DNA of 57,317 nt from the NCBI GenBank assembly GCA_002269645.1, contig NIVC01004164.1, positions 1-57,317 of the forward strand, written 5' to 3'. This document shows, one piece after another, positions 1,289-57,059 of the stretch; position 1 is the stretch's first letter, and each line of letters opens with the position of its first letter. This DNA comes from Macrostomum lignano. Lineage: Eukaryota. A program made the translations under genes and the position numbers. The notes under the pieces are model-generated. The model was not told the origin of the DNA, searched no databases, and saw nothing but the letters and a program-made list of their open reading frames with translations.

Positions 1289-2209
1289 TTGCTGAATCTG
1301 AATGCATCTGTGGACTATAAATGCACATGTGGATCAAATAAATCAGAGTGTCCAGCCATCGGCAAAACCTGTCGCAAGTGCGGTAAGCCGAACCATTTTG
1401 AAAAGCAGTGCAGATCCAAAGTCAGAAGTCAACACCACGTAGCGAAGACTGAAGACGTGCTGACGGCAGATGTCCTGGCGATCGCGAACACCCTCTCAAC
1501 CAGAGGAGGATCCTGTCCGACCATCCAGCTGCCGTGCTCCGTCAAGGGTAAAAGCAGGCAGATTCAGTGTCAACTCGATACGGGGGCCACTGTATCTGTC
1601 ATGTCGAGCAGCTTGTGGAGAAGTTTGGGTAAGCCGCGGCTGCAACCCAGTGAAGCTGTACTGATTGGCTACACGGACGACCATAAGTTCGACCTTCTAG
1701 GCCAACTCGAGCTACAAGCTGTCTGGAACGGTGGTCCGATTCAAGTCACGTTCCATGTTGTGGCATCCAACAGAAGCTTCGCCTTATTGGGGCGAGATGT
1801 AGTGCACATTGACCTGGAGGCAATATCGATTGGACACTCACATGTGCTGGATTCCGGACAGGAGATGCCCGAGATCGACGCTCAGACCAGGTTCAAGGCG
1901 CATCTACAGCTCAAGGATGACGCCACACCGAGGTACATGAAAGCACGCTCAGTTCCGTTTGCTTTAAAGTACAAGCTTCGATCAGAACTTGATGAGCTTC
2001 TGAGGGACGGAATAATTGAACCCGTGAAGTTCTCTAACTGGGCGTCTCCTATTGTACTCATCCAGAAGTCAGATGGCGGTATTCGACTGTGCGTAGACTA
2101 CAAGCAAACAGTAAACCCTCAGCTTGTGAACGACAGTTACCCATCGCCAACCCAGAGGAGGCTTTTTCAGCTGTCACCGGTTGTCATTTCTACTCTATTT
2201 TGGACCTGA
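1289..2209 (+). pseudogene. Gypsy gag C-terminal zinc knuckle, aspartic protease and start of RT
   Basis: CRKCGKPNHFEKQC (CX2CX4HX4C), LDTGA, WASPIVLIQKSDGGIRLCVDYK. Reading frame shifts near 2150 (YPSP -> NPEEAFS). The ORF-track start at 1289 is TTG and not a real start. Confidence 0.9.
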
Positions 2210-4225
2210 AGAAGGCGTACCATCAAATAGAGCTGGATGAAACATCAAAGGAGTTGACAGTGATGGCCACCCCGTTCGGGAATTTTCGCTTCAATCGGTT
2301 AGTCTTCGGCATCAAAACAGCGCCATCAATTTTCCAGCGGTTTATCTCCGAGGTGATTCTAGGCATCCCGGGGGCCGTGGCGTATGTCGACGATATCCTG
2401 ATTGGCGGCCGAACGAAGCAAGAGCTCAATCAACGAGAGTCGGCGGTCAGAAAGCAGCTGGCATGCTACAAGCTCAAGATCAACGAGTCTAAATGCCAGT
2501 TGGCGAAGAACCGTGTGCACTTTCTGGGCTTCATCTTAGAATCTGGCGTAATAAAGCCAAGTGAGGAGAAAGTTCGAGCCATCCGGGAGATGACAGCTCC
2601 GAAAAGCATCGCCGAACTGGAATCGTTTCTAGGAATGATAAACTTCTCCGGTCGATTCATTAGAAATCTGGCTGAACTGATCGAGCCTTTATCAAGGCTG
2701 AGGCGGAAGGATAGCGAGTTCGTGTGGACTAACGCAGAAGAATCCGCCTTCCAAAGGATCAAGGCGGCCCTGACTGAAGAGACCATGCTGGCGACCTATG
2801 ACCCAAGTAAGCAGCTTGAACTTGAGTGTGATGCTTCACAAGTCGCAATCGGAGCAGTTCTTAGTCAAGAAGGCGTGCCAATAATATTCGTCAGCAAGGT
2901 TCTGTCACCAGCAGAAAAGAAGTATTCGCAGATCGAGCGAGAGGCTCTGGCTATCGTGTGGGCGGTCCGTCGTTGTCACCGGTTTCTATTCGGACGCGAG
3001 TTTTCGCTGCTGACAGATCACAGGCCACTCACCTTCATCTTCGGCCACGACAGCCAGCTACCAGAGCGTGTGTCGGCGCGTCTTCAGAGGTGGGCTATCA
3101 CGCTCTCTGGATACAGTTACACCATCACGTACAGAAGATCGGCCGAGATGAAGTCCGACGCACTATCGAGATTGGTTAAACCGACGAACACAGCGACCAC
3201 TCACCATGTCGGACACGCCCCTGTCTGCGAAGGAACTCTGCTGAGTCTACAGGAGTTAAGGTGTCACAGCCGGAAGTGTCAAGAACTAACGAAACTAGTT
3301 GACGCTATCCAGACAGGACGTTTCCGTACAGATGAGGTCAGAGCGTACAAACCTTTAGCTGGTGAACTTTCTACTCAGGACGGCTTAGTAATTCGAGGAA
3401 ACAAGCTGGTTGTCCCCGTGACGCTGAGGAGTAGAGCGGTCTCTGCAGCACACAGTGTGCACCTCGGCATTGCACGAACCAAGTCGTTGCTTCGGGAGGG
3501 CTACTGGTGGCCAGGCATGGACAAAATGGTGGAACTGCAGGTCGGGAGCTGCAGTGTTTGTAGAATGGCCAAGCCTCAGAACAGAAATTTCAGGATCTCG
3601 TGGCCCGAACCGGAAGGACCATGGACGAGAGTGCATATGGATTTCGCAGGACCCATTGAAGGAAGTTATCTTCTGATACTGGTGGATGCTTACTCGGGCT
3701 ATCCGGAGGTACACTTGACGAAAGACATGCTATCATCAACAGTTGTGAGTAGGCTGCGACGAACGTTCTCTCAACTAGGGGTACCAAATCAGCTGGTGTC
3801 AGACAACGGCCCGAGCTTCGTCAGTGATGAGACCCGTCAATGGCTGACAAAAGTCGGTGGCAACTTGATCACAACGCCGGCGTACCACCCTCAAAGTAAT
3901 GGTTTGGCGGAACGTTTCGTGCGGACAATTAAGGAGGCCATCAAAGCAAACGGACTCAGTCAAGCAGTTATCGATCGCTACCTGTTGTTCTATCGAGCAT
4001 CTGGTGGGAAGAGCAGAGCATCACCCGCAGAACTGCTGTTCGGCAGAAAGATCCGAGCACCACTGCTCTCCAATAGGCCAACCTGGGCACCCGGCGAGCA
4101 TCTAATCTACAAAGCCGGCCGACGGGCTCAAGAAGCTTCACTAGTTTGCCAACGGGTTCAAACATGGCCACTATCAAGGTGGGGCCCGATCTGTACAAGA
4201 AGGCCCACCTGGATCAACTCCAGAG
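2150..4225 (+). pseudogene. Gypsy pol: RT, RNase H, integrase
   Basis: LDLKKAYHQ, YVDD (2383-2394), ECDASQVAIGAVL, YSQIEREALA, LTDHRPL, HLGIARTK..YWWPGM..CSVC, VHMDFAGP, SDNGP, YHPQSNGLAERFV. Second frameshift near 4150 before ..KKAHLDQLQ. Confidence 0.93.
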
Positions 4226-4567
4226 GCATAGTCCCATGCAAGTCGATAGTTAAGCAGCAGAGATCAACACCGAGGCTGACACAGACCAAGCCGCCGGGGC
4301 GCGAGCGTCGGACAGCAGTCAGAACGTCGGCAGAAGCTCCTGTGTCATTTCTGAAGACTTACAACCGCTACCACCACCCCCCGAGGACTCCGGAACACAG
4401 CCCTCACAGCAGCATCAACAGCTGCTGACGCCTGGTCGGCTGGAACTGACGCCTGAGGAGTTGGGCCCCAGGAGAAGTCGCCGTCTGTGTGGGAAGTCCC
4501 GCGTCAACTACAAGGAGTGAACTTGCGAGTGCATCTGAACTGTTAGAGTGTGCAAGTTCATTTTTGT

Positions 4568-4686: not shown

Positions 4687-4825
4687 GGTCGTGAAGCAAT
4701 CCAAGTCGATGAGCTTGGAGATAATAAAGCGAGAAAGATCAGAGCTGATCATATCTAAGACGAGCCAGACTCGCATACCATCGCTACAATTATCGTGTGT
4801 GGCTTCTTCAAGACATAACACAAGG

Positions 4826-5989
4826 TTTATCCCTTGCTCCAATCACAGCCTCAACCTCGCCGGATCACACGCATGTTCCACAACTGTAGGGGCTGTGACC
4901 TTCTTCGGGACTGTTCAGAGAGTCTTCACTTTCTTCTCGGCTTCGACTGGTCGTTGGGCTGCTTTGGAAGCCCAGATCGACATTGATGGGCAAGGCCTCA
5001 AGCCAAAGAGGCTAATTGAGACGAGATGGAATGCTCACTATGAGGCCGTACGAGCTCTACGGGCTCGACTGGAGAATATCCTGGATGTACTGGACAACAT
5101 GAGCAAAGACCAAACCTTCTCTGTCGACACAAGGTCGGAGGCAATTTCTCTGTCCACGGGCATCTGCTCCTTCTCGTTCTTTGCCCATCTGCACTATTGG
5201 GAGCCCATCCTGAAGGAGATCAACGTCGTTCAAGAGGCTTTTCAACAGAGAGGATTGGGTCTTGACTCAACTAAGGTTCGTGTTGTTGGGCTTGAGCGCT
5301 TTTTGAATCAGTCACGAGAAGATGTTGTCAGTGATGCAGTCCATGAGGCAGAGTCCCTCTGTGAGAAAATGGGGGTCACGATGGAGAAACGCATGCCACG
5401 ACGAAAGAGGATGCCAGGAGAGAACGCCAAGTATGCGGGCTTGACCCCAAAGGAAGAAATTCGAAGGCAATTACTATCATCCCATGACAGGTTGTGTCAG
5501 GAGCTTTCTTCCAGATTTGACGCCATCAAATCGACCTGCGATATTTTCTGCCTCATTGACGTCCTCTTCACAAAAAGAAACATTGGAGAGGAGGTGGAAA
5601 AAGTTGTAGAGACCTTCCCCAAGGATATCTCTAAAGACATTGAGGTCGAAGTTCATCGACTCCGAAGATTGGTGCCTAGCGAGATCAATGAGAAGTCCAC
5701 TGCAGAGGAAGTGCTACAATGGGCTCTCAGGATGGAGCTACAGGATGTCCTGCCTAACCTCATTGTGCTGTTGCGGCTGTTTTTGACCTCGGCTGTGTCT
5801 GTTGCATCCTGCGAAAGAAGCTTTTCAAAGCTGAAGCTCATCAATAGTTACCTACGGTCAACCATGTCTCAAGCTCGGCTTGATGGTCTCTCCATCCTTT
5901 CCATTGAGCAGGAAGAGGCCAAAGCTCTGGACTTCAGCAAAATCATCAATACCTTTGCCAAAAAGAAGTCCCGCCTTGGTGCACTCTAG
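4826..5989 (+). pseudogene. hAT transposase (ZMYM1-like class), C-terminal part; 5' part missing
   Basis: FIPCSNHSLNLAG (CxxH), ETRWNAHYEAV, and dimerization domain SAVSVASCERSFSKLKLINSYLRSTMSQARLDGLSILSIE. ORF open from 4691 (GTG) but homology only clear from ~4826. Confidence 0.92.
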
Positions 5990-6724: not shown

Positions 6725-7112
6725 CATGGATGAATGAATAGAATGGATTGCTATTCTGGCTCTGGCTATTTTCGTTTTTGACTCTTTTGCATCCGGTTCC
6801 CCCCGTGCCTTTTCATTGGTTGATGATTGCCATAGACAATTTTCGGCCTTCGCCCCTTTCTTTCGATGCACAAGCGCTTTCGCTCGTGTTTTGAAATAAA
6901 GGGGGAAGACCTACGAGCGCTCGATATTCTCTGCAAGTAACTGACATTCTCAGTTCTTTTCGCTTGTGCATCGAAAGAAAGGGGCGAAGGCCGAAAATTG
7001 TCTATGGCAATCATCAACCAATGAAAAGGCACGGGGGGAACCGGATGCAAAAGAGTCAAAAACGAAAATAGCCAGAGCCAGAATAGCAATCCATTCTATT
7101 CATTCATCCATG
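6725..7112. mobile_element. 388-bp MITE with 152-bp TIRs, P-element-like or hAT termini
   Basis: Arms 6725-6876 and 6961-7112 are reverse complements starting CATGGATGAATG. Exact 8-bp TSD ctggcggc at 6717-6724 and 7113-7120. Confidence 0.92.
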
Positions 7113-10100
7113 CTGGCGGCTCCGTCACCTGGCCTTTGGCGCTGAAAGTCGGTCACAAGCGGCTGCTAATCAGCCTGCTGTGGCTGAGTTTCAATATTTG
7201 AGAGGCTCAATTAGCATGAGGATCGAGAGGCGAAGCAGCGGATTTCGGGCACGCAATGCAATTATTGGCGCGGGAATATGGGAGATGGCATTGAGGACTC
7301 TAAAACTTGACAGTCGTGTCCGCAAGGGAATAGAGAAGAGTAACAATTAGCTCCAATCCCTAAGCAGCCGAGCGCCGTCACAAGAGCGGGAATATAGCCC
7401 TATGGTATATCGGGAAGTACGCGGCAGGCTGACTCTCGCTCCGAAGTACCTGGGCATGGATTTTCTTCAGCGCGGCAAGCAGCAATTTTGAGTGCGTGCA
7501 CGCGGACATTATGGGATTCACTTCCGAGCAAGGCCATTTAGCCCTCAAGACTGTGTGCATTCCTGGCCTGACTTTGAGAAAATCAGGACCGCTGTACCGG
7601 GTACATGTGCACCTAGGCAGTGCACAGTGCTTGTTGCCTACGTTGAATTGTGCTCAGGGATCACATGGAATAGGAATTTAAAGTCAACTATAGTTCCTCC
7701 TCGTTTGTTGCGAGTTGCCCGCTACTGCAGCAACAAGTCATGCGCCTCGATAGTAGCGGATTTAGTGAGGGGGCGCAAAGGACGCGCGTTTGTTGTTTTA
7801 AACTTTTTATAGCTATGGGCAATACATTATCGAATACATAAATAATCAAAGGAAAAGTAACCTTAGTAATCTGCCCCTCCCTTCAAAATTTTCCTCGTGA
7901 ACTCCCGTAAATCTAGCCGCATGCCATCCTCATAAAAAATTGCCAAAAGACTATTTTTGCTGCACTGACGCCGTCGGCATACTTGCATGCATCTTCAAGA
8001 TTCAATCTGAATTAACAGCACATGTGGTCGGAAATAAAAAAACAACCATGCATCTAACTAGTAAATTTCATCGATTTAAAAATGAAAAATTTAAATTACG
8101 AGTAAAAATTATTGATATATCGAGGTGGTTTCTGACCGGGGCGAGCAACAGTGAACCGGCCACATGTACTGTACATGTATACTAGATTTCTTGACTCAAA
8201 ATTTTCGCACGGCCGACGCGAGAAATGATCGAATCAATGATGAATTGCTGTTTTCTTTTAAAGAAGTTCTAAAATTAATTTGACGCTACTTGACTTATTT
8301 GACTTAGCCGCAGGGCGCGGTCAAAAGACGCAAACGGGGAGGTGAGCGTCGCCCATTCCGCTAATCAATGGAAGTGCATATTCTTGTGCGCGGGGCCGGT
8401 CAGGGTTGTCTCTGCGCCAGACCTGTCTGCAGCGTGGTCCTAGGTAGTGAAGACAGAGGTTTAGTAGCCTGAAGGAACCGCGGATGATGAGCCATGGGGA
8501 TGTTCTTCGGGCCCGCAAGCGTCGTCGTGTCCAGGCCCGCGGGGAGGGCCGTTGGGTCCGCGAGGTATAGTAGTGGAGCCGGTCTCGGTTAAAGCTGGCC
8601 GCGGGCGACGGCCAACTATCGCTTAAAAAGGTGAAATGCAAGAAAGTAATTCCCATGCAGTTATTTCTCAAATTTGACCTCTGAACTTCCGCAGATAATA
8701 TGAAGCTACGGTCTGTAGCTACGCTAAAGATCCTGTAAATAAGGACTAAAAAAGACCAAGGTCGACTTGAACAATCACCTTACATGGAAGTAGAAACGAT
8801 TTGATAAGCTTGGGGCCAGAAGCATTCGTGTAATAAATGAAAGACAAAATAAAGCTTCCAAGCATAGACTGGTGAAGTGAAAATATAGGATTTTTTAATA
8901 AACGTGCATGGGTGCATGTCTAGCCCCAACATCAAAAGGCATTGCTCCACTAGCCCCCGTTTCTTACTTGACATCTATGACTCTGTCAGTCCTATTAAGA
9001 TATCACGATTTCAGGATATCTGTTTTAAATTTCACATTCTTAGAAATCGACCTAGAACGGGAAGTGAGACCTAATATTATAAATTTAATTAACATTTATT
9101 TACAGTATAGTACAAGCAAGAAAGCATGCAAACCTTAGATATGAAGTATATTTAGAAGTATAGTTAGATTATAGGGCAATCTATATCGATATCAATCTAT
9201 CAATCTATACCGACACCCGACCAGCATGGATTTAATCGGTAGAAAAGGTAAACGTTTTCTACGATTAGATAGGGTAGATGGCATGTCGACTGCCAGCATA
9301 ACATGCTTTCCTTCTGATTAAAAGCGGACTGTATATACTTGTATTGGGCAGTTATGGCGCGCAATTCAAAAGCCTACGCACAACCAATATTATAATGGCT
9401 CGACATATTTAATTAGTATAGGGCATTGTGTTAGTATGTATGAATTCAAGACCTAGACTAATAAAGCAGTTTGTGTCTAGAGTCGAAAACTTTGGAAATG
9501 TGTCGCCCTAGCTTGCACAAAAAGCCATGTATGACATGACTGAATGAAATTTAATTAGGAGGTTAATGATTGTAAAATAAACTAGCTACTTGGACCTCTT
9601 GACAATGACAATAAGGATGAAATGGTCCTGTTGCAGGCAGATATTAATTGGCTTTAAAAAAAGTAAAAGCTTGATGGCTAGCTAGCTAGGTGGCCTTGGC
9701 TCACCCAGTTATTGGCCTTATATTGGCCTTCTTATCAATATGTGGGCCATTTTGTACTGCATTCTGCTTTAATCTACTTTGTTTTTCTTCTTTATTGCCA
9801 GGTATTTAGTATAATTTTTTAGCTCTTAGTTGTATTCTTTATTTTAATATCACTCTATACTTGTACCATGAAAAGAAACACAAAAGGCCTTGTCAATTTT
9901 AGGCCTATGATAGGTAGCTAGCTATGTTATTTTATTTTAGTAATAGGCCTATAGCTATTAAGAGTAGGCCTACTAAATTATTAGTCTATAAAATGTATAT
10001 GGTCTAAAATAGGCTAGCTATTTTAGACCCTATTATATTTTATGCTTCTTGTCTAACAATCTAATAATTGTTGTAGGCCAATATTATGAAATGTATAGGC

Positions 10101-10359
10101 CTAGCTATAGAAAAAGAAAAAGAAGCCAATAACCTTCCTAATGAATAAATTAATTAATATTAGTTCAGTTGTGTATTTACTTTATATTTATTGTCATATG
10201 AATTATATACTTATATTGCATTTAGCCTAGGCCTATCTACTCTAGTCTGCCTATCCTCTACCTATGTTTGTTCTCTCAATCATTATATTTTTACTTTTTC
10301 CCTCTCTTAATTCCTTTATATCATGCTTCTCAATTATCTCCCATCTTTGCCCCTCCCCA

Positions 10360-11640
10360 ATTCCCTTCTATCCTGCCTATCCCCAATTCCCTCCTATCCT
10401 GCCCACCCCCAATTCCCTCCTATCCTGCCCACCCCCCAATTCCCTCCTATCTTGCCCACCCCCAATTCCCTCCTATCCTGCCCACCCCCCAATTCCTTCC
10501 TATCCTGCCTATCCCCCAATTTCCGCCATCCTGCCCTTCAATCTTTTCACCCTTGGGTTTTAAGCTATAAACCCAAGGCAATTCAAAATCTAGAAATGGA
10601 TTTCAAATTGGAAAATTGAATTCAGCATTTCAAGCACCTTTCAAAAAGGCGAAACTATAGAGCTAGAAAATATGGAACTATTTAACTACCTTAAGTTCAA
10701 TAAGTTATAGTTGGATATTGCCAACTCTTTTCCAGGTGCCTCTATCTAGCTAATGCTAACAAAAATGTTGCAAGGTGTACTTTAATATTATATTTGTTCT
10801 AGTAAGCAGTTTTTCTGTGTCTCCCATTCTACCCCACCTTCCCCTCCCGTTCTACCCTTCCATTCCTTCCCATTCTACCCCTCCATTCCCTCCCATTCTA
10901 CCCCCACCATTCCCTCCCATTCTACCCTTCCATTCCCTCACATTCTACCCCCTCCATTCCCTCCCATTCTACCCTTCCATTCCTTCCCATTCTACCCTTC
11001 TATTCCTTCCCATTCTACCCCTCCATTCCCTCACATTCTACCCCCTCCATTCCCTCCCATTCTACCCTTCCATTCCCTCCCATTCTACCCTTCCATTCCC
11101 TCACATTCTACCCCCTCCATTCCCTCCCGTTCTACCCTTCCATTCCCTCCCGTTCTACCCTTCCATTCCCTCCCATTCTACCCTTCCATTCCCTCACATT
11201 CTACCCCCTCCATTCCCTCCCGTTCTACCCTTCCATTCCCTCCCGTTCTACCCTTCCATTCCCTCCTATTCTCTATACCCTCCTTATACCCTCAATACTC
11301 TCCCTATACCCTCTATACCCTCCATATACCCTCCGTATACTCTCCATACCCTCCATATTTTTTCTATACCCATACATGGCCTCCTTGTACCCTCTATGCC
11401 TTCCATATACCCTCAATACTCTCCCTATACCCTCCATACCCTTCTATACCCATTCTTACCCTCCATATACCCTCCATACCATCCCTATACCCTCCATACC
11501 ATTCCTATACCCTCAATACCATCCCTATACCCTCCATACCATCCCTATACTCTCCTTATAACCTCTCCATACCCTCCATACTTTTTCTATACCCACCCAT
11601 GGACTCCCTGTACCCTCTATGCCCTCCCTATGCTCTCCAT
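10360..11640. repeat. Pyrimidine-rich minisatellites in left arm (aattccctcctatcctgcccacccccc; cattctacccttccattccctcc; ataccctccat)
   Basis: Direct reading; mirrored at ~19980-21160. Confidence 0.9.
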
Positions 11641-11774
11641 ACCCTCCTGCTTTTCCTATCCTTCCCGCGTTATACTTTTCCCTATCCAGCCTCTACTATT
11701 CCCTCTTTCCACCTCCAGCGCCTCCCCCTCTCTAGCCCCTACCCTCTCTTCCTTTACTTTCCAGCCCCCATCCT

Positions 11775-12750
11775 CTACTCCACTCCAGCGCCCTCCCTCT
11801 CCTCCACTCCAGCGCCCTCCCTCTCCTCCACTCCAGGGCCCTCTCTCTCCACTCCAGCGCCCTCCCTCTCCTCCACTCCAGCGCCCTCCCTCTCCTCCAC
11901 TCCAGCGCCCTCCCTCTCTTCCACTCCAGCGCCCTCCCTCTCTTCCACTCCAGCGCCCTCCCTCTCTTCCACTCCAGCGCCCTCCCTCTCTTCCACTCCA
12001 GCGCCCTCCCTCTCCTCCACTCCAGCGCCCTCCCTCTCCTCAACTCCAGCGCCCTCCCTCTCCTCCACTCCAGGGCCCTCTCTCTCCTCCACTCCAGCGC
12101 CCTCCCTCTCCTCCACTCCAGCGCCCTCCCTCTCCTCCACTCCAGCGCCCTCCCTCTCCTCCACTCCAGCGCCCTCCCTCTCCTCCACTCCAGCGCCCTC
12201 CCTCTCCTCCACTCCAGCGCCCTCCCTCTCCTCCACTCCAGCGCCCTCCCTCTCCTCCACTCCAGCGCCCTCCCTCTCCTCCACTCCAGCGCCCTCCCTC
12301 TCCTCCACTCCAGCGCCCTCCCTCTCCTCCACTCCAGCGCCCTCCCTCTCCTCCACTCCAGCGCCCTCCCTCTCCTCCACTCCAGCGCCCTCCCTCTCCT
12401 CCACTCCAGCGCCCTCCCTCTCCTCCACTCCAGCGCCCTCCCTCTCCTCCACTCCAGGGCCCTCCCTCTCCTCCACTTCAGCGCCCACCCTCTCCTCCAC
12501 TCCAGCGCCCTACCTCTCCTCCACTCCAGCGCCCTCCCTCTCCTCCACTCCAGCGCCCTCCCTCTCCTCCACTCCAGCGCCCTCCCTCTCCTCCACTCCA
12601 GCGCCCTCCCTCTCCTCCACTCCAGCGCCCTCCCTCTCCTCCACTCCAGCGCCCTCCCTCTCCTCCACTCCAGCGCCCTCCCTCTCTTCCACTCCAGCGC
12701 CCTCCCTCTCCTCCACTCCAGCGCCCTCCCTCTCCTCCACTCCAGCGCCC
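11775..12750. repeat. 21-bp tandem array (ccactccagcgccctccctctcct core) in left arm
   Basis: About 46 units; mirror array 19170-19835 has about 31 units. Confidence 0.95.
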
Positions 12751-13879
12751 ACCCTCTACTCTCCTTGGTTATCCCTTCGTTACGCTCTTCCCTCCTCTCT
12801 GTTTTACTTACTGTGTCATGCATAACCCGTCTGCTACAGTGTTTTTAAATAGCCTTTTATACCCTCCTCTTTCCCTAGCCCCTCCTCCCCCGGCGGCTCC
12901 CCTTCTCGTAGCTCTGCTAATAAAATCGTAATTCTTCTTCTCTTCAGAATAATTTGCCCAGCTGCGAACTGTGATGGTGCATACCGGGTACTCGCAATTT
13001 AAAAAGCGTATGCTTCTTACTGATTTACTGATTTAATTCCGACGCAACCAAGCAAATCGTTTACTTTCAAGTCCGTGCATTTTTCTTGTGTTTAACTTTT
13101 CACCGTTCGGCGTTAATGCCGTGTGGCGTTGGTGTAATACTATCGCGAAATTCAATTTCCAATGTCATTATCTAACTATTGTCGCTTTTCTGTATTACAA
13201 CTATATACTATACTTCTGCATTTATTGACGTAACATTGTGCCAATAATGTCACATTGTGTGGCCTCAATATGAATCTGTTGCTGAATGCAACTTATAGCC
13301 CATTGACCAGTTTAATCGCTTGAAATACATTGTAATGTAATACTGTATCGCTTTTGGCAATCGAAACGAGACTTTAGCCAGACTCCTCACTGATCCAAAT
13401 GCTCCTCAAGCAAAGGTACGAGTATATGGAAAGCAGACTGAGCTCCGCAGACTTAGTATATTTGATCTTCGGATCGCGGATAGAACCAAGGAAATCTTGG
13501 TACGTAAATAAAATTGGAGTCACTTTTCCTACTTCCACTTTCCCTGCTCTTTCCCTGACCACAGTCTGTGCCCCAGGCTCAAGTTAGACCAACGCAAAAT
13601 ACTAACCTGAATAGGAAGCAAGCAACTCACTTCCCACTCTAGTCTTTTTCTGCCACTGTTGTCTTGCAATACTCGCAAAGATCTCGTATGGCGTCCTATT
13701 TGAATTGGCGCGTCTCGTTAACGTAGTCGAAAGCAATACTGGTGCCAATTATTTGTGTCGATCAAGTTTCCTAGAGAATGATTTGTTGATAACTGTATAT
13801 TCGCTGTCTTAGAGCTGCACGCTGTGTTTAACCATTACTTTGTCGTAGAGGAGCTGATGAAGGGAGGCGTTGGGGCGGA

Positions 13880-14720
13880 CCTTTTGGAGGGGCGGAGCTG
13901 ATGGGGGGCGGTAGCGGCGGAGCTTTTGGAGGGGCGGAGCTGATGGGGGCGGTAGGAGCGGAGCTGATGGGGGGCGGTAGGGGCGGAGCTGATGGGGGGC
14001 GGTAGGGGCGGAGCTGATGGGGGCGGTAGCGGCGGAGCTTTTGGAGGGGCGGAGCTGATGGGGGCGGTAGGAGCGGAGCTGATGGGGGGCGGTAGGGGCG
14101 GAGCTGATGGGGGCGGTAGCGGCGGAGCTTTTGGAGGGGCGGAGCTGATGGGGGCGGTAGGAGCGGAGCTGATGGGGGGCGGTAGGGGCGGAGCTGATGG
14201 GGGGCGGTAGGGGCGGAGCTGATGGGGGCGGTAGCGGCGGAGCTTTTGGAGGGGCGGAGCTGATGGGGGCGGTAGGAGCGGAGCTGATGGGGGCGGTAGG
14301 GGCGGAGCTGATGGGGGGCGGTAGGGGCGGAGCTGATGGGGGCGGTAGCGGCGGAGCTTTTGGAGGGGCGGAGCTGATGGGGGCGGTAGGAGCGGAGCTG
14401 ATGGGGGCGGTAGGGGCGGAGCTGATGGGGGCGGTAGCGGCGGAGCTTTTGGAGGGGCGGAGCTGATGGGGGCGGTAGGAGCGGAGCTGATGGGGGCGGT
14501 AGGGGCGGAGCTGATGGGGGGCGGTAGGGGCGGAGCTGATGGGGGCGGTAGCGGCGGAGCTTTTGGAGGGGCGGAGCTGATGGGGGCGGTAGGAGCGGAG
14601 CTGATGGGGGCGGTAGGGGCGGAGCTGATGGGGGGCGGTAGGGGCGGAGCTGATGGGGGCGGTAGCGGCGGAGCTTTTGGAGGGGCGGAGCTGATGGAGG
14701 GGGGTCGAAGGGGCGGAGTT
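13880..14720. repeat. G-rich compound array built on ggcggagctgatggggg in left arm
   Basis: Direct reading; mirror 17890-18060 is much shorter. Confidence 0.95.
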
Positions 14721-14944
14721 GATGGAGGATGGTTTTTCTATTTATTCGACCGATTGAAGTATACACAACGTATATCGTCATTTAGTCAAGTTTTGAACCC
14801 AGTCATACAAAATATATATTTTTTCATTAATTTCTGTCAATCCTACGCGAAAAATCATAAATCATTTTGTTGCGATTTTGAGTGATTTATGGCCGCACCT
14901 GTCATCTTTTTACGACCCTGTGGGAACTGATAGGATCTCTCGGT

Positions 14945-15075
14945 CACGTGATTCTGGGTAGCAACGAGCTTAGCCAATCAGAAAATTCGGCGCTCATTTT
15001 AACAAAACGGCTCAGCCAATCAGAATCGACGTGTTCCGTTATAACAAACTACGGTCCAGTTGGCGGCTATTTAAA
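14945..15075 (+). promoter_or_regulatory. Pol II promoter-like cassette in the foldback spacer
   Basis: E-box cacgtg 14945-14950; two AGCCAATCAG boxes at 14972-14981 and 15014-15023; tatttaaa 15068-15075. Confidence 0.5.
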
Positions 15076-16549
15076 CCGGAGTTTTTGGCCCGCTCGGACA
15101 CTACTTCTTCTTACTTTGGCTCGGGCCCAGCGCGCAACTTCTGGTTCCCGGAGCACGACCGTCGTTTCTTGATCCCCGGATTGCAACTTCCCCCATCATC
15201 ATCAAGAACGAGTCCCCGGTCGACAGCAGCGAACATCCAGTTAAGAGCATCACCTGCTAGCTAACAGCGAAGATTGTGACAGCATCATCCCGAGTCTACA
15301 GCTGCAGAGCATCGAGCCGATTCGGTCACTGTGGAATACCTGGTCTCCGGCTGTTGAGTTTCTGATTGGTTGGGTGAGAGGCTACCTAGACTTGCTTGAT
15401 TGGGTGATCCCTTTTCTGTCCCCTGTTGCAGTAGCTGAATTAGGCGCACACTTTTGCTCATTTTGTTCAGTAGTGCTGTTGCTGAGGCAGGAATCATTCA
15501 ATAATACTGCCAGCAGTAGTCTAAGACTCCAATTCAATCTAAAGTGTGAAGTGAATTAAGGAGAAGGTTAAATCTAACAGTTATCTTTGTCGGCTTTATT
15601 TCTTTGTTCGCCGATGGCTCAGATGAGTAGCTAAGCTAGTAGGCGCCGGTCACAGTGGACCAATGGCAAGGCAGTTCTCAGTCGACCAATCTAACAAATC
15701 AGTGAGCAAAACTGCCAAAAGTGCAGAATCGGCGCCAGAGATGTACTTTGTGCACTCTAGGGTAGCCAAGCGGCTCGGGTAAATGAATCATGCGGTCTCT
15801 GAGGTTCGAGTTAGCCTATCATCAGCGCTATGAGAGGCTAGTTGGCGCGTTGAAGGCTAAAAGTACATATCTTCGTATTTAGCAATGTAATAGTACATGT
15901 AGCTACCCCATAGACTCGCCACCGCAAGAATCCCCTGCACAAGTCCCCTCTGTACCTGCATGGCCAACGCGATCTAGTCCCAGCAGTGTCCCTTATCATC
16001 GGCTATGACTTCGAGATTGACAGCAAAAAGACACTAGTTGGCAGGTAAGTGCAAAGCCCCTTCTAGTCGGAAGCCCGATTTCGAGAGTCCCGGTGTGGTG
16101 AGCCAGGGCGCACGGGCTGGTGGCAGCAAGTTAGTTGATCTGCGGATTAGCTAATTTCTACTTTCAAAATTCTCCCTGCTCGTCTCTCGCTGTCCCTCTC
16201 TTAGCTATAGGACCTAGACTGCTCGCCACACGATCAAGCTACCATGGGGCTGACCATCTGACAGGAGTGGGGGGCCAGGTCTCTAATTGATTTATTTCTG
16301 AGCCTGAGGCCCGAAGGCTTCCCTAACAAGGAGCCCGAAGGTCGAAACCCATCAATCAGTTTAGTTTCAATTTAAAACACTTGCCTCGTTTTGAGGCCTG
16401 TTAACCAGTTCCAAGGTCTACTACTTATCTCAATGTAAATGCAAATTCTCAGGCTTTATTTTTAGTGTGTAATTTTAGCCATATTTAGACGGCCTCTCCG
16501 ACATGGTACATGTAATTGGATTGAGCCTTGAAAGTACTCAGCAACATTA

Positions 16550-17700
16550 TACATAAAGTGGCGCACAATGAATTAAGACCACCTAACACAAATTCGAACT
16601 TTTATAGTTTCATAACCTTCACAGATTGCGGAAGCATTTAATCTAATCAGTTATAGATAACCGTGGTATCAATCAGTAAAATTATAGTTATGTGTTGTGT
16701 AATTACTCACAATTGAGTCTGTTTAATTGAAGTCCTTATCTCACAATCGAATTTGATAAGTCACACAGTAATAAGACCACTTAATTAATTGGGCTAAAAG
16801 GTAGGTGCTACAACAGTGGGGCCCCTGCTGATTCCAAAGTCCAAAACATCAAGTTCAATACAACTCCAAGCAAAAATGATCTCGAACTCTCCTAGAATGG
16901 GAAAGGCAAAGCTCTATCGCCTGAATCGTGTAGGAAAATCAGGGCCCTGTTCGACCAAGGAGTTTCCCAGCGTGCCAAAGTCACGTACGCAGAAAACGTG
17001 CGTCCAGCAAGCATTCAGGCGCCACAGCAGCACTGGCAGCACAGGCTGTGCCTCAAGACCTGGCAGGGCACCGAAAACTGACCACCGACTGGATCGACGA
17101 ATTGTGCGAATGCCCGAGTCCAACCGTCGGCTAACCGCTGTGGACATCAGCCGTAAACTTTTGGTGTCCAGCTGCACCCCATGACTGTCCGCCGCCGTCT
17201 GGTAGCTGCCGGACTGCATGGCCGCATTGCTAGGAAGAAGCCATTCATCTCCGACAAAAACCGGAAGCGGCGCTTGAACTGGGCGAAGCAACATGCAAGC
17301 TCTACACCCCAGGACTGGGGCCAAGGTCATCTGGAGTGATGAGAGCAAATTTTCCCGCACTGGTTCTGATGGTCGCCGGTATGTGCGCCACCGAGCTGGT
17401 GAGGAATTCGATTCCAGGTGCCCCGTTTGTTCCATGAAGCATGTAGATGGCACTGTCATGGTGTGGGCTGCATTCTCCAGAGCTGGACCTGGGCCAATAA
17501 CTCGCATTGAGGGCATCATGGACAGAGGCTGTAGATGCGCTGCCAGTTTCAGCAGGACAACGATCCGAAGCTTGCTGAGAACAACATCCGCACCATGGAC
17601 TGGCAATCCAATTGAGAATCTGTGCAACTGGGTCGAGCTGGACTGGGTTCATAACTTCACCGAATGACGATAGCTGCATGTGGATCTAATATCCCCACGA
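16550..17700 (+). mobile_element. Decayed Tc1 transposon; transposase pseudogene ~16897-17667
   Basis: ATG 16897; GRAPKTDHRLDRRIVR, MTVRRRLVAAGLHGRIARKKP, VIWSDESKF, KHVDGTVMVW, QQDND, NPIENL across frameshifts. Left TIR-like gtggcgcacaatgaattaagaccac with inner taagaccac repeat. Right TIR not recognisable. Confidence 0.9.
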
Positions 17701-17830
17701 TTACTAACCAAAGAAATAAAATGTCTAGCTTTTGATGAGATTGTGAGACTACATGTACATTACAGTATACACATGTATAAACTATACTAGACAAACAACT
17801 ACACTACCAGCGTAGCTCGAATACACGTAC

Positions 17831-20800
17831 ACGTTGTGTATACTTCAATCGGTCGAATAAATAGAAAAACCATCCTCCATCAACTCCGCCCCTTCGATCC
17901 ACCTCCATCAGCTCCGCCCCTACCGCCCCCCATCAGCTCCGCCCCTACCGCCCCCCATCAGCTCCGCTCCTACCGCCCCCCATCAGCTCCGCCCCTCCAA
18001 AAGCTCCGCCGCTACCGCCCCCCATCAGCTCCGCCCCTCCAAAAGGTCCGCCCCAACGCCTCCCTTCATCAGCTCCTCTACGACAAAGTAATGGTTAAAC
18101 ACAGCGTGCAGCTCTAAGACAGCGAATATACAGTTATCAACAAATCATTCTCTAGGAAACTTGATCGACACAAATAATTGGCACCAGTATTGCTTTCGAC
18201 TACGTTAACGAGACGCGCCAATTCAAATAGGACGCCATACGAGATCTTTGCGAGTATTGCAAGACAACAGTGGCAGAAAAAGACTAGAGTGGGAAGTGAG
18301 TTGCTTGCTTCCTATTCAGGTTAGTATTTTGCGTTGGTCTAACTTGAGCCTGGGGCACAGACTGTGGTCAGGGAAAGAGCAGGGAAAGTGGAAGTAGGAA
18401 AAGTGACTCCAATTTTATTTACGTACCAAGATTTCCTTGGTTCTATCCGCGATCCGAAGATCAAATATACTAAGTCTGCGGAGCTCAGTCTGCTTTCCAT
18501 ATACTCGTACCTTTGCTTGAGGAGCATTTGGATCAGTGAGGAGTCTGGCTAAAGTCTCGTTTCGATTGCCAAAAGCGATACAGTATTACATTACAATGTA
18601 TTTCAAGCGATTAAACTGGTCAATGGGCTATAAGTTGCATTCAGCAACAGATTCATATTGAGGCCACACAATGTGACATTATTGGCACAATGTTACGTCA
18701 ATAAATGCAGAAGTATAGTATATAGTTGTAATACAGAAAAGCGACAATAGTTAGATAATGACATTGGAAATTGAATTTCGCGATAGTATTACACCAACGC
18801 CACACGGCATTAACGCCGAACGGTGAAAAGTTAAACACAAGAAAAATGCACGGACTTGAAAGTAAACGATTTGCTTGGTTGCGTCGGAATTAAATCAGTA
18901 AATCAGTAAGAAGCATACGCTTTTTAAATTGCGAGTACCCGGTATGCACCATCACAGTTCGCAGCTGGGCAAATTATTCTGAAGAGAAGAAGAATTACGA
19001 TTTTATTAGCAGAGCTACGAGAAGGGGAGCCGCCGGGGGAGGAGGGGCTAGGGAAAGAGGAGGGTATAAAAGGCTATTTAAAAACACTGTAGCAGACGGG
19101 TTATGCATGACACAGTAAGTAAAACAGAGAGGAGGGAAGAGCGTAACGAAGGGATAACCAAGGAGAGTAGAGGGTGGGCGCTGGAGTGGAGGAGAGGGAG
19201 GGCGCTGGAGTGGAGGAGAGGGAGGGCGCTGGAGTGGAGGAGAGGGAGGGCGCTGGAGTGGAGGAGAGGGAGGGCGCTGGAGTGGAGGAGAGGGAGGGCG
19301 CTGGAGTGGAGGAGAGGGAGGGCGCTGGAGTGGAGGAGAGGGAGGGCGCTGGAGTGGAGGAGAGGGAGGGCGCTGGAGTGGAGGAGAGGGAGGGCGCTGG
19401 AGTGGAGGAGAGGGAGGGCGCTGGAGTGGAGGAGAGGGAGGGCGCTGGAGTGGAGGAGAGGGAGGGCGCTGGAGTGGAGGAGAGGGAGGGCGCTGGAGTG
19501 GAGGAGAGGGAGGGCGCTGGAGTGGAGGAGAGAGAGGGCCCTGGAGTGGAGGAGAGGGAGGGCGCTGGAGTTGAGGAGAGGGAGGGCGCTGGAGTGGAGG
19601 AGAGGGAGGGCGCTGGAGTGGAAGAGAGGGAGGGCGCTGGAGTGGAAGAGAGGGAGGGCGCTGGAGTGGAAGAGAGGGAGGGCGCTGGAGTGGAAGAGAG
19701 GGAGGGCGCTGGAGTGGAGGAGAGGGAGGGCGCTGGAGTGGAGGAGAGGGAGGGCGCTGGAGTGGAGAGAGAGGGCCCTGGAGTGGAGGAGAGGGAGGGC
19801 GCTGGAGTGGAGGAGAGGGAGGGCGCTGGAGTGGAGTAGAGGATGGGGGCTGGAAAGTAAAGGAAGAGAGGGTAGGGGCTAGAGAGGGGGAGGCGCTGGA
19901 GGTGGAAAGAGGGAATAGTAGAGGCTGGATAGGGAAAAGTATAACGCGGGAAGGATAGGAAAAGCAGGAGGGTATGGAGAGCATAGGGAGGGCATAGAGG
20001 GTACAGGGAGTCCATGGGTGGGTATAGAAAAAGTATGGAGGGTATGGAGAGGTTATAAGGAGAGTATAGGGATGGTATGGAGGGTATAGGGATGGTATTG
20101 AGGGTATAGGAATGGTATGGAGGGTATAGGGATGGTATGGAGGGTATATGGAGGGTAAGAATGGGTATAGAAGGGTATGGAGGGTATAGGGAGAGTATTG
20201 AGGGTATATGGAAGGCATAGAGGGTACAAGGAGGCCATGTATGGGTATAGAAAAAATATGGAGGGTATGGAGAGTATATGGAGGGTATATGGAGGGTATA
20301 GAGGGTATAGGGAGAGTTTTGAGGGTATAAGGAGGGTATAGAGAATAGGAGGGAATGGAAGGGTAGAACGGGAGGGAATGGAAGGGTAGAACGGGAGGGA
20401 ATGGAGGGGGTAGAATGTGAGGGAATGGAAGGGTAGAATGGGAGGGAATGGAAGGGTAGAATGGGAGGGAATGGAGGGGGTAGAATGTGAGGGAATGGAG
20501 GGGTAGAATGGGAAGGAATAGAAGGGTAGAATGGGAAGGAATGGAAGGGTAGAATGGGAGGGAATGGAGGGGGTAGAATGTGAGGGAATGGAAGGGTAGA
20601 ATGGGAGGGAATGGTGGGGGTAGAATGGGAGGGAATGGAGGGGTAGAATGGGAAGGAATGGAAGGGTAGAACGGGAGGGAAAGGTGGGGTAGAATGGGAG
20701 ACACAGAAAAACTGCTTACTAGAACAAATATAATATTAAAGTACACCTTGCAACATTTTTGTTAGCATTAGCTAGATAGAGGCACCTGGAAAAGAGTTGG

Positions 20801-22306
20801 CAATATCCAACTATAACTTATTGAACTTAAGGTAGTTAAATAGTTCCATATTTTCTAGCTCTATAGTTTCGCCTTTTTGAAAGGTGCTTGAAATGCTGAA
20901 TTCAATTTTCCAATTTGAAATCCATTTCTAGATTTTGAATTGCCTTGGGTTTATAGCTTAAAACCCAAGGGTGAAAAGATTGAAGGGCAGGATGGCGGAA
21001 ATTGGGGGATAGGCAGGATAGGAAGGAATTGGGGGTGGGCAGGATAGGAGGGAATTGGGGGTGGGCAAGATAGGAGGGAATTGGGGGTGGGCAGGATAGG
21101 AGGGAATTGGGGGTGGGCAGGATAGGAGGGAATTGGGGGATAGGCAGGATAGAAGGGAATTGGGGAGGGGCAAAGATGGGAGATAATTGAGAAGCATGAT
21201 ATAAAGGAATTAAGAGAGGGAAAAAGTAAAAATATAATGATTGAGAGAACAGACATAGGTAGAGGATAGGCAGACTAGAGTAGATAGGCCTAGGCTAAAT
21301 GCAATATAAGTATATAATTCATATAACAATAAATATAAAGTAAATACACAACTGAACTAATATTAATTAATTTATTCATTAGGAAGGTTATTGGCTTCTT
21401 TTTCTTTTTCTATAGCTAGGCCTATACATTTCATAATATTGGCCTACAACAATTATTAGATTGTTAGACAAGAAGCATAAAATATAATAGGGTCTAAAAT
21501 AGCTAGCCTATTTTAGACCATATACATTTTATAGACTAATAATTTAGTAGGCCTACTCTTAATAGCTATAGGCCTATTACTAAAATAAAATAACATAGCT
21601 AGCTACCTATCATAGGCCTAAAATTGACAAGGCCTTTTGTGTTTCTTTTCATGGTACAAGTATAGAGTGATATTAAAATAAAGAATACAACTAAGAGCTA
21701 AAAAATTATACTAAATACCTGGCAATAAAGAAGAAAAACAAAGTAGATTAAAGCAGAATGCAGTACAAAATGGCCCACATATTGATAAGAAGGCCAATAT
21801 AAGGCCAATAACTGGGTGAGCCAAGGCCACCTAGCTAGCTAGCCATCAAGCTTTTACTTTTTTTAAAGCCAATTAATATCTGCCTGCAACAGGACCATTT
21901 CATCCTTATTGTCATTGTCAAGAGGTCCAAGTAGCTAGTTTATTTTACAATCATTAACCTCCTAATTAAATTTCATTCAGTCATGTCATACATGGCTTTT
22001 TGTGCAAGCTAGGGCGACACATTTCCAAAGTTTTCGACTCTAGACACAAACTGCTTTATTAGTCTAGGTCTTGAATTCATACATACTAACACAATGCCCT
22101 ATACTAATTAAATATGTCGAGCCATTATAATATTGGTTGTGCGTAGGCTTTTGAATTGCGCGCCATAACTGCCCAATACAAGTATATACAGTCCGCTTTT
22201 AATCAGAAGGAAAGCATGTTATGCTGGCAGTCGACATGCCATCTACCCTATCTAATCGTAGAAAACGTTTACCTTTTCTACCGATTAAATCCATGCTGGT
22301 CGGGTG
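17831..22306 (-). repeat. Right TIR arm (4476 bp)
   Basis: Starts acgttgtgtatacttcaatcgg; shorter than the left arm because internal arrays have fewer units. Confidence 0.93.
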
Positions 22307-22312
22307 ATACCG

Positions 22313-22435
22313 ATAATCGGCTATCTTCAAGTTTCGTTCGTTTAATTATTTCCGGAATTATTTCGCCCTCTATTCAAGGGTGGTGGGGGGTGGGTGTTAG
22401 AATTAAACGAACGAAACTTGAAGAAAGCCGATTAT
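22313..22435. mobile_element. Small ~123-bp inverted-repeat element (MITE-like)
   Basis: ataatcggctatcttcaagtttcgttcgtttaatt ... aattaaacgaacgaaacttgaagaaagccgattat; one mismatch; TSD not clear. Confidence 0.65.
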
Positions 22436-40501: not shown

Positions 40502-43500
40502 TCAGACCCGGTCGATGCCGCCTGCCGCCTCCCCGGCCGTCTCCTCCTCCAGCGGCTCGCCACAGAAGCCGCCGCCGCAGGTTCCGACAACCGGGTTGAC
40601 TTCACCGTCATCCTCGGCTTCGAAGTCGCCGTTCTCCAGCAGGTTCAGCGTGCTCTCCGTCTGGGCGCTCATCGTTAGCAGCTGCGGCTGATGGAGCAGC
40701 AGGTGCTGCTGGCGGCGCTGCTTGTACTGCCGGGCCATGCCAAAGAACTTGCGAGCCATCTCGGCGAACCGGCGGCCCGACACTGCGGTGGGGGATGGCG
40801 AGAATTCGATGGCGGCCTCTGCAAACCACTGCCCGCTTCCACACTCACCACTGCCCGCTTTCACACTCACCACTGCCCGCTTTCACACTCAACACTGCCC
40901 GCTTCCACACTCACCACTACCCGCTTTCCCACTCACCACTGCCCGCTTCCACACTCACCACTGCCCGCTTCCCCACTCACCACTGCCCGCTTCCACACTC
41001 ACCACTGCCCGCTTCCCCACTCACCACTGCCCGCTTCCCCACTCACCACTGCCCGCTTCCACACTCACAATCATATTGCTTGCTTCCACACTCACTCACC
41101 ACTGTCCGCTTTCACACTCACCACTGCCCGCTTTCATTCACAATCATATTACCTGCTTCCACACTCTAAATAAAGCATCCACACCCGCAATACCAGCTTC
41201 CGACATTGGAACCCGATTCCAGCCCGCTTGGAACCCGATTCCAGCCCGCACACGCTACCAAAATTCACGCATCGAGCTCGCCCAACTCACTTTTCCCCAT
41301 GTGCCGCAGCTGGCTATTGAGGTCGTCGCCGCCAGCAGCTCCTGTCTGGGAGGCAGCGCCGCCGACATCTGACTTGCCCGACGACTCCATGGGCGACTGG
41401 TCGGCGCCGTAGCCATCTGCGCGGCAAAGAGGGTGAGATTGGAGATTTTCACTGAGACAAGGAAAGCTCTCTGTCCGAGATGAGATTTCGGTCTCTGACT
41501 GCTCACCCGTTGGCGCCAGGCCGCCCGGCACCAGCTGGCCAGTTTCAACTATGGAGGTCACCGGCATCGACGGTCGAGGCGGCGGCGGCAGGAACGGCGG
41601 CGGTGGGAAGGCCGGCTGCGGCGGCGGCTGCATCGGGTAGGCCGGAGGTGACGGTACCGCGGCGGCGGGGGCGGGCTGCGAGTAGGAGCGCGCATGCGGC
41701 TGCGGCTGCTGCTGCCAGTGCCCGGCCGGCTGCGTCAGCATGAGGCGGCGGGTGCGGCGGCTGCTGTCCCGCTGCAGGGTGCGCATGAAGTCGCTGTCGT
41801 TGCGCAGCAGGGACAGAAACTCTTCGTTCTGCAGGGCGATGGCCAGCCGCTCATCTGCCAGAATCTGATTGTACACCGCGCTGTGGCTCTGCGGCTGCTG
41901 GTGCGAGAGTCCGTTGCTATGGTAACTAGAGGATGGAGAAATCGCCTGCGGCTGCTGAAGAAGCTGCTGCTGCTGCCAGGAGACTCCGCTCGGCCTTTGA
42001 CGCGGAAGCTGCTGAGGCGGCGTCTCCGGCAGCTGGTCGGTGGGGTCGCGGGCCTCCCGCTGCCGCTGCCAGCGCTTCTGTGGCCTCCGCCGCTGCCCCC
42101 GCCACCGGTCCTGTGGTGATGATGGTAGCGGCCGCAGTTGCTGCACTTGTGGTGGTGGCTGCGAATGCGACCGGAGGCGCCGCCGCTACGCCCGCCGCCC
42201 TGCCGTCCGGCGGAGCCCGCGGTGGCGGCGACAGACGCGGCCGAAGAGGCGGTGGAGGCGGTGGCGCCGGCCGAGCCGCTGGCGGGCGTCGAGATGCGCA
42301 GGAAATCGTCGGGCAGGGCGCCAAGCAGCGGGGGGTTCCAGCGCCGGTAGCCGGAGGAGCCGCCGGATGAGGCAGCCGCTGGAGCTGCGGCAGCGGACGA
42401 GGCGCAGGCAGCGGAGGCTCGGAAGTTGTAGCTGCTGAATGTTGTCGCCGAAGGCTGCGAGTGCGACCGGTGATGCCCGCCTGCTGCTGGCGCTGCCGCT
42501 GTTATTGGCGCTGCCGCTGAGGCTGGCGGAGGCGGCGGTGGAGGCGGCGGAGGCGCCTGCTGTTGCGGCTGCAGTGACGACAGGCCGTGACGAATTCCGC
42601 CGCCATGCCTGCCGCTGCCGCCCTGTCTGGAGTGCTTGGGCGGGTGCGTGTGGTGCCTGTCCGGCCGGTCCTGTTTGTCCGGCCGGTCCTGTTTGTCCGG
42701 CCGGTCCTGTTTGTCCGGCCTCTCCTGCTGGCCGCTGCCGGCAGGCCGCTGACTCGCTCGCAGAGCCTGGCGGTGGGATCGGAGAAGACGGACACGAATG
42801 CAACAGTGAGGCGTTGAGCATTCAGCAACTAAATGAGCACACACGTTAAAAGCAAGGACGACATAAGTAGAAGGACGGGAAACCTCGTTTCTTAGAAACT
42901 TTTTGAAGGCAGGTTTTTTTTCGAAAAAAATACACTACGAAGATAGGAAGTTTTCGTTTTTTCAGCACAATCTTGTAATATGTTGTGTCTTTTTATTGCT
43001 CTATCGATATTCATAGAGCTTTTTGTTCAGAAAATTAGGATTCTATGTTATTTATTGTTTTGTTTTGTTTTGTTTTTTATTGTTTTTTATTCTACGTACA
43101 TTTGCACGTGTCCTGTGCCTAAATACCATTAAAATGACACGGCTCGGCTCTATTGATCTATGATTCTATTTTATCATTCTTAGCTGACTGTGTAACAAAT
43201 ATGTGTAGCAGAGATAATAAATTAGACTCATAAAACCATAGATTGGAGCTGTGCCATGCATTTTTATGAGTTTTAGGTGCAGCAAATGTACGTTGAATAA
43301 AAAATTAACATAGAATCCTAATTTTTTTAGCGAAAAGCTTTATGAATATCGATAGAGCAATAAGAAAGGCACAACATATCAAAAGATAAAGACTGGATCT
43401 GCCTCCTATCAAAAGCAATCCTTGACGTCCTTGGTTGGAAGGCGATCCAAAATCAGGAGAAAGTTTACAGAGAAAAAAATAAATAAAACTCAACCAATTT

Positions 43501-57023: not shown

Positions 57024-57059
57024 CTGAAATAATCTTAAAGACTTTTGAGGAATGAGACT

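Follow-up and report, generated by a model that had tools for sequence, protein, structure and literature searches.

A 13-kb palindromic unit in the flatworm Macrostomum lignano, probably a non-autonomous foldback transposon with minisatellite-rich arms and a 7-bp target-site duplication

The classical foldback elements, FB of Drosophila melanogaster, Tetris of D. virilis (PMC4079207), TU of sea urchin and Tm1 of Meloidogyne (PMC3169594), share a layered organization in which a flanking domain, an outer tandem-repeat domain and an inner domain lead to a small non-coding middle domain. They are non-autonomous, their arms become unequal through differences in repeat copy number, and they have the potential to seed satellite arrays and rearrangements. 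Their target-site duplications (TSDs) measure 8-10 bp and they have been assigned to the Mutator superfamily. In Galileo of Drosophila, which belongs to the P superfamily, the TSD is 7 bp (PMC3573991, PMC4168063), and some copies consist of two long terminal inverted repeats (TIRs) without a transposase; copy 112 of D. willistoni, for instance, is 9,021 bp in length with TIRs of 4,246 and 4,680 bp (PMC4168063). A full-text search found no literature on foldback elements in flatworms. Here we describe a palindromic unit of 13 kb at positions 9207-22313 in 57,317 nucleotides of the flatworm Macrostomum lignano (contig NIVC01004164.1 of assembly GCA_002269645.1; the whole stretch is hereafter called the window), which shows the organization of a foldback element. 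Its outer parts are the following.

9207..9213, no strand: left TSD, ATACCGA, identical to 22307-22313.
9214..14771, plus strand: left arm (TIR), 5,558 nt, terminus CACCCGACCAGCATGG; inverted blocks at 99-100% identity, with the terminus at the two ends only.
17831..22306, minus strand: right arm (TIR), 4,476 nt, mirror of the left arm with fewer array units, as seen from the inverted blocks, BLAST and Tandem Repeats Finder (TRF).
22307..22313, no strand: right TSD, ATACCGA, from the TSD test.

The pairing of the arms is supported by two comparisons. A repeat search linked 9214-13949 with 17977-22306 through collinear inverted blocks of 1178 nt (100%), 694 nt (100%), 1315 nt (100%) and 1791 nt (99%), and the same inverted repeat was confirmed when the left arm was aligned by BLAST with the right arm in reverse complement. 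The homology stops on the inner side at 14771/17831, and on the outer side it does not extend by even one base beyond the termini. Both ends read CACCCGACCAGCATGG, exact copies of which are found nowhere else in the window. Immediately outside, ATACCGA abuts both ends as a direct repeat, and a programmatic TSD test shows that 7 bp is the only length that fits; a 7-bp match at one fixed position is expected by chance with a frequency of 4^-7, or about 6e-5. The flanks beyond the duplication are unique, non-palindromic and different on each side, so that the element lies wholly inside the window. An earlier reading of the letters without database searches (the sequence-only reading) had placed the arms accurately to the base and had recognized both the matching termini and the exact 7-bp duplication. 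Its view of one unit inserted as a whole, a non-autonomous foldback whose TIRs are very long and repetitive inside and whose TSD is 7 bp, is also supported.

We therefore consider it probable that the 13-kb unit goes back to one insertion, in a flatworm genome, of a class II (cut-and-paste) DNA transposon that is non-autonomous and of the foldback type. The identification follows from the exact TSD abutting exact inverted termini, together with the layered domains and the lack of coding capacity, a combination that corresponds to the published definition of foldback elements (PMC4079207). Once a later insertion at the centre, described below, is discounted, the arms with their tandem arrays make up most of a 10.2-kb element, the middle is short and non-coding, and a TSD flanks the whole. 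The element is a striking, unusually large and well-preserved copy of a known structural class, and represents neither a new kind of element nor a new mechanism.

Each arm contains five minisatellite arrays, four outer ones that are C-rich and one inner one that is G-rich. From the outside inwards, a unique AT-rich flanking domain of 1,134 nt is followed by a 26-bp array and, after 284 nt of spacer, by a 23-bp array that passes into a 20-bp array; beyond a second spacer of 112 nt come a 24-bp array, a unique internal domain of 1,126 nt and the inner G-rich 24/25-bp array. The parts of the left arm, with their mirrors in the right arm, are as follows.

9214..10347, plus strand: terminal unique domain, 34% GC, non-coding; 2 mismatches in 1,134 nt relative to 21173-22306.
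10348..10536, plus strand: 26-bp minisatellite array of about 7 copies, unit TGCCCACCCCCAATTCCCTCCTATCC (TRF); mirror at 20985-21172.
10821..11647, plus strand: 23-bp array (about 19 copies; 15 in the right arm) and then 20-bp array (about 25-29 copies), both with a CCCTCC core (TRF and core count); mirrors at 19967-20700.
11760..12761, plus strand: 24-bp array of 42 copies (29 in the right arm), unit TCCAGCGCCCTCCCTCTCCTCCAC (TRF); the 312-nt difference between the arms equals exactly 13 units, with 0 substitutions.
12762..13887, plus strand: internal unique domain, non-coding; 0 mismatches in 1,126 nt relative to 18039-19164.
13888..14725, plus strand: inner 24/25-bp G-rich array in 90/114-bp higher-order units, about 32 copies as compared with about 7 in the right arm at 17877-18076 (TRF).

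The CCCTCC core is common to the four outer arrays, with 74 copies in the left arm and essentially none elsewhere in the window. Because of this shared core and its near-absence elsewhere, the four outer arrays look like diversified descendants of one motif. The unique domains of the arms show no coding capacity upon six-frame translation, with stops in all six frames and no open reading frame (ORF) longer than 62 aa, and the long ORFs found in the arms are merely open frames running through the arrays. The segments outside the arrays differ between the arms by only 2 substitutions in 2,656 nt (99.9% identity). The difference in arm length consists of whole repeat units only, namely 13, about 4 and about 25 units in the 24-bp, 23-bp and inner arrays, respectively. 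Presumably, slippage or unequal exchange adds and removes whole units in the arrays, and the near-identity of the unique arm sequence would reflect a probably recent origin, intramolecular gene conversion, or both.

The segment between the arms, 3,059 nt (3.06 kb) in length, is not the native middle domain of the foldback. It is composed as follows.

14773..14774, no strand: TA duplication on the left of the nested element.
14775..17670, plus strand: nested, decayed Tc1/mariner-like element, 2,896 bp, with ends TCGTCATT.../...AATGACGA and a frameshifted, truncated transposase remnant at about 16900-17640, recognized from its TIRs, the TA and a helix-turn-helix (HTH) domain.
17671..17672, no strand: TA duplication on the right of the nested element.
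17673..17830, no strand: original foldback loop (middle domain), about 160 nt, non-coding, pairing with no other part of the element.

The inverted ends, the flanking TA, a Tc3-type HTH and motifs of the DDE region identify most of this central segment as a nested, defective Tc1/mariner-like insertion. Its ends form a 32-nt inverted repeat at 88% identity that abuts the arm end, 26 of the 30 terminal bases match, and TA stands on both sides. The HTH domain is HTH_Tnp_Tc3_2 (PF01498; E=4.3e-15). The transposase remnant is frameshifted and truncated at its C-terminus, and the Tc1 DDE-region motifs VIWSDESKF, GTVMVWAAFS, FQQDNDPK and NPIENL are distributed across its frames. Thus, the stretch 14775-17670 displays the TA duplication, short TIRs and Tc3-type HTH with a DDE remnant of Tc1/mariner elements. 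The left end of the nested element adjoins the exact point at which the arm homology stops. The sequence-only reading was correct that no intact transposase is present inside the unit, but it had missed this decayed element at the centre.

Within the nested element, a 114-nt module at 14811-14924 is 95.6% identical to a stretch of another M. lignano contig, NIVC01000010.1 (5800-5913 of the sampled stretch L005), which lacks the rest of the nested element. The module may be a separate short repeat that was captured by, or inserted into, the 2-kb non-coding left part of the nested element. The match stops short of the end of the nested element, and therefore provides no independent check of its boundary. 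The TIRs of the nested element are absent from about 92 kb of further M. lignano DNA (stretches L005 to L008).

Removal of the nested element and one TA restores a foldback of 10,195 bp (about 10.2 kb) that has no coding capacity and whose loop measures about 160 nt. This allows a tentative reconstruction of how the locus arose. The original element, two inverted arms of about 4.5-5.6 kb around the short loop, would have been mobilized by a transposase supplied in trans from an autonomous relative elsewhere in the genome, which would have recognized the CACCCGACCAGCATGG termini. Cleavage of the target with a 7-nt stagger and repair of the gaps would then have duplicated ATACCGA, so that the empty site before insertion would read CAATCTATACCGATAATCGGCT with a single ATACCGA. 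At a later time, the defective Tc1/mariner-like element entered a TA at the junction of arm and loop, and the spacer thereby grew to 3.06 kb. A long palindrome is unstable when its spacer is short, and the 3-kb spacer provided by this insertion may stabilize the palindrome. With a broken ORF and 4 mismatches in its 30-nt TIRs, the nested element looks old, whereas the arms around it are 99.9% identical, a contrast that hints at homogenization of the arms. However, the nested copy may have been defective already when it inserted.

Among the described systems, the long-TIR copies of Galileo (PMC4168063) resemble the flatworm element in several respects. Both have a 7-bp TSD and the form of two long TIRs without a transposase; Galileo TIRs of 4.2-4.7 kb in a 9-kb copy also contain tandem repeats and nested transposons, and vary in length by repeat expansion. 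The sequence-only reading had put Galileo TIRs at about 1 kb, which the dimensions of D. willistoni copy 112 contradict. Its description of the TIRs as unusually large holds as far as their extreme size is concerned, but TIRs of about 5 kb have a precedent in D. willistoni. The differences from Galileo are in the host (flatworm instead of Drosophila), in the lack of any THAP/P transposase linked to the flatworm element, in the TSD (ATACCGA instead of GTANTAC) and in the repeats, which form five arrays of short units (20-26 bp) per arm here as compared with repeats of about 140 bp in Galileo. The classical foldbacks agree with the present element in the succession of domains, in non-autonomy and in the origin of unequal arms, whereas their 8-10-bp TSDs do not correspond to the 7 bp found here. 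In Tetris, moreover, the TIRs reach at most 1.7 kb with one repeat type (220 bp), unlike the arms of about 5 kb with five array types described here.

Two smaller foldbacks in M. lignano DNA provide a nearer comparison.

6725-7112 of the window: mini-foldback, 388 bp, with perfect 152-nt arms, an 84-nt loop, termini CATGGATGAATGAATAG and an exact 8-bp TSD CTGGCGGC; 0.7 kb downstream of a hAT remnant.
17778-18468 of stretch L008 (M. lignano NIVC01003469.1): foldback, 691 bp, with arms of tandem units of about 32/65 bp, ends GGGGGCGCTTCATAAGACC.../...GGTCTTATTAAAGCGTCCC and an exact 8-bp TSD GACAGGAC.

Both are palindromic, non-coding foldback MITEs (miniature inverted-repeat transposable elements) of the same genus with exact TSDs, and the arms of the second, like those of the large element, consist of short tandem units. 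Array-bearing foldback elements thus exist in M. lignano, and the two TSD-flanked copies demonstrate that the genus hosts this type of element. In contrast to the 13-kb element, however, they measure 0.4-0.7 kb, have 8-bp TSDs and carry unrelated termini (CATGGATGAATG... in the window and GGGGGCGCTTCAT... in L008). They are of different families from the 13-kb element and probably of different superfamilies. The ends of the mini-foldback look like those of hAT/P-type elements, and bear no relation to the termini of the large element.

The superfamily of the large element can be assigned only tentatively from its sequence. We regard the P superfamily (Galileo/1360 type) as the leading and single most likely candidate, although the other superfamilies taken together are about as likely. 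The basis for this candidacy is a single feature, the TSD length of 7 bp; on this point the P/Galileo-like family proposed in the sequence-only reading agrees with the locus. Within the P superfamily, Galileo and 1360 have TSDs of 7 bp and P itself has one of 8 bp. No THAP/P transposase is present in the element or in the window. Galileo prefers GTANTAC within a palindromic 15-bp motif (PMC4168063), and ATACCGA, the single site available, matches only 2 of the 6 specified positions and is non-palindromic. The motif (A)GGGTAGA(A), a candidate transposase site, occurs at nt 25 and 58 of the terminus and, in the opposite orientation, within the 23-bp array. It does not rise above chance, however, since 328 and 366 of 1,000 shuffled termini share as many k-mers with the arrays. 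These observations weigh somewhat against a P-like origin, weakly so in the case of the target, which is one site only, as does the failure to find a second copy in the sequences searched. Conservation of the roughly 40-bp conserved terminal sequence of Galileo between Drosophila and a flatworm is not expected, and any relationship to Galileo would be at the superfamily level at most.

The element may instead be a foldback of another superfamily, either Mutator-like (as FB, Tetris, Tm1 and Phantom), hAT-like or of an undescribed group, with a 7-bp TSD that is atypical or specific to the family; we hold this possibility as tentatively as the P-like one. Most foldback elements have been assigned to Mutator (PMC4079207), the clade of P, hAT, MuDR, Kolobok and Dada makes TSDs of 4-10 bp (PMC3706591, PMC10045372), and a TSD length of about 8 bp is given for both the P and hAT superfamilies (PMC3706591). 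The 8-bp TSDs of the two small Macrostomum foldbacks point in the same direction, as do the hAT transposase remnant in the window, although it lies outside the element at 4691-5989, and the failure to find anything P-like. On the other hand, the termini show no relationship to those of the small foldback at 6725-7112, whose TSD is 8 bp. FB-type Mutator foldbacks have a 9-bp TSD and hAT elements an 8-bp TSD. The duplication found here measures exactly 7 bp, with no possible reading as 8 or 9 bp, and therefore corresponds neither to the 8-10 bp of Mutator-like foldbacks, including Tetris (PMC4079207), nor to the 8 bp of hAT. Dada would fit by its TSD length of 6-7 bp, but it lacks TIRs and its insertions are confined to transfer RNA (tRNA) or small nuclear RNA genes (PMC3706591). 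It is ruled out by the 5-kb TIRs and by tRNA and Rfam scans, which detected no such family at the insertion site or in the window.

A more far-reaching proposal is that the locus represents the first P-superfamily (Galileo-like) giant foldback family outside Diptera, in flatworms, and one that is recently or currently mobile, as the 99.9% arm identity might suggest. The multi-array 5-kb TIRs would then serve as multimeric transposase-binding platforms, and the palindromic copies would drive inversions and fragility in a rearrangement-prone Macrostomum genome. We consider this proposal doubtful.

The identification as a transposon insertion has to be weighed against several observations that speak against it. 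The palindrome is known from the assembled contig alone. The rest of the window contains no second copy and no matching terminus, and no part of the large element, including its termini, is present in the sampled 92 kb of M. lignano. A 718-aa ORF running through the arm, when compared with 5.8 billion predicted proteins, gave one spurious low-complexity match only. Among metagenome contigs of the Joint Genome Institute (JGI), neither the terminal 24-mer nor the 24-bp array unit had any match. No autonomous partner was identified in the window or the sampled DNA. In addition, exact-protein look-ups of the window ORFs for sister copies returned no record. Since the copy searches in the window, the M. 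lignano sample, proteins and metagenomes did not extend to the host genome, we take their failure as absence of evidence only. Two look-alikes of the terminus with 3 mismatches, at 32434 and 52422, were rejected, as they show no inward extension and their alignment scores are at the level of the shuffled null. Inverted arrays in stretch L007 proved to be (GACA)n/(TGTC)n microsatellites and not a transposon.

A single known copy with near-identical arms would also be expected just after a one-off inverted duplication by replication or repair, through fold-back priming or template switching, in which case the 7-bp repeat would be microhomology or a chance match. Such an event predicts one native boundary and one junction rather than a 7-bp direct repeat at both outer ends, for which the chance is about 6e-5 as given above. 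Transposition accounts better for the layered architecture and for the occurrence of other TSD-flanked foldbacks in the genus, and we judge a one-off duplication to be very improbable.

An assembly artefact, in which a chimeric foldback long read (with a missed adapter, or with both strands read in succession) created a false palindrome, appears very improbable. Reads of this kind are known to yield long, near-perfect palindromes, and the evidence from a contig alone leaves room for one. However, the palindrome is internal to the window between different unique flanks and ends precisely at a 7-bp direct duplication, and the arms differ by whole units in three arrays (13, about 4 and about 25), a difference that is biological and does not stem from a mirrored read. 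The centre is likewise asymmetric over 3 kb, containing the TA-flanked nested transposon and the 160-nt loop, and has no sharp point of symmetry. A composite of two separate elements of about 5 kb in inverted orientation, mobilized together through their outer ends (macro-transposition) with the centre trapped between them, would also be expected to have one TSD around two long inverted units, but it is scarcely credible, because the inner arm ends lack CACCCGACCAGCATGG in either orientation, so that an arm is not a complete two-ended element, and because only about 160 nt separate the arms once the nested Tc1-like element is removed.

The surroundings of the foldback transposon are those of a transposon-rich eukaryotic region with tens of kb of minisatellite arrays. 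The other coding features of the window are as follows.

1289-4428: Ty3/gypsy gag-protease and pol (reverse transcriptase, RNase H, integrase), 55-76% identical to Macrostomum and metagenome copies.
4691-5989: C-terminal half of a hAT transposase (Dimer_Tnp_hAT), immediately after the gypsy element.
46236-46649: ORF with a DUF3504 domain (E=1e-14).

The closest named relatives of the gypsy pol are Macrostomum lignano proteins (55-72% identity). One of the adjoining gypsy and hAT sequences probably truncates the other. The DUF3504 domain, which occurs in Crypton-related and ZMYM-type genes, may mark part of a multi-exon gene or a transposon remnant.

Several non-coding repeats are also present. 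At 22316-22432 lies a Stowaway-like MITE of about 117 bp with inverted ends of about 33 nt, ATCGGCT[A/T]TCTTCAAGTTTCGTTCGTTTAATT, flanked by TA. It starts 2 bp past the right TSD, which implies that the foldback inserted right beside an older MITE. A palindromic MITE-like repeat at 42970-43419, with arms of about 90 nt at 87% identity, has an 87% identical copy in NIVC01000010.1 (L005, 7091-7214). By similarity alone, this repeat, the 114-nt module and the gypsy relatives would place the host, with good probability, in M. lignano or a close congener. Between 23000 and 42900, about 20 kb is almost all minisatellite, with more than 15 different arrays of 18-72-bp units, all C-rich on the plus strand, and a further array block at the end of the window (53800-57317) is G-rich on the plus strand. 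No inverted partner and no termini were found for either block. These blocks could be what is left of other elements with arrays, or could be typical of this genome in general. A direct repeat of about 695 nt at 93.5% identity, with copies at 47566-48260 and 51049-51739 that lie 3.5 kb apart and each carry an 18-bp array AGAACGACACTCAGGAAG, could be long-terminal-repeat-like or a segmental duplication.

Macrostomum lignano is a transgenic model of regeneration whose genome is highly repetitive and difficult to assemble. Near-perfect, minisatellite-rich palindromes on the kilobase scale probably give rise to assembly breaks, inversions, deletions and double-stranded RNA, and their annotation is useful to those who work with this genome. 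The locus is also an example of a long palindrome whose arms are held apart by an insertion nested in the loop, an arrangement that may stabilize the palindrome. If the element belongs to a family and is not a singleton, it would add flatworms to the hosts of giant long-TIR foldbacks with 7-bp duplications, which have so far been documented for Galileo in Drosophila.

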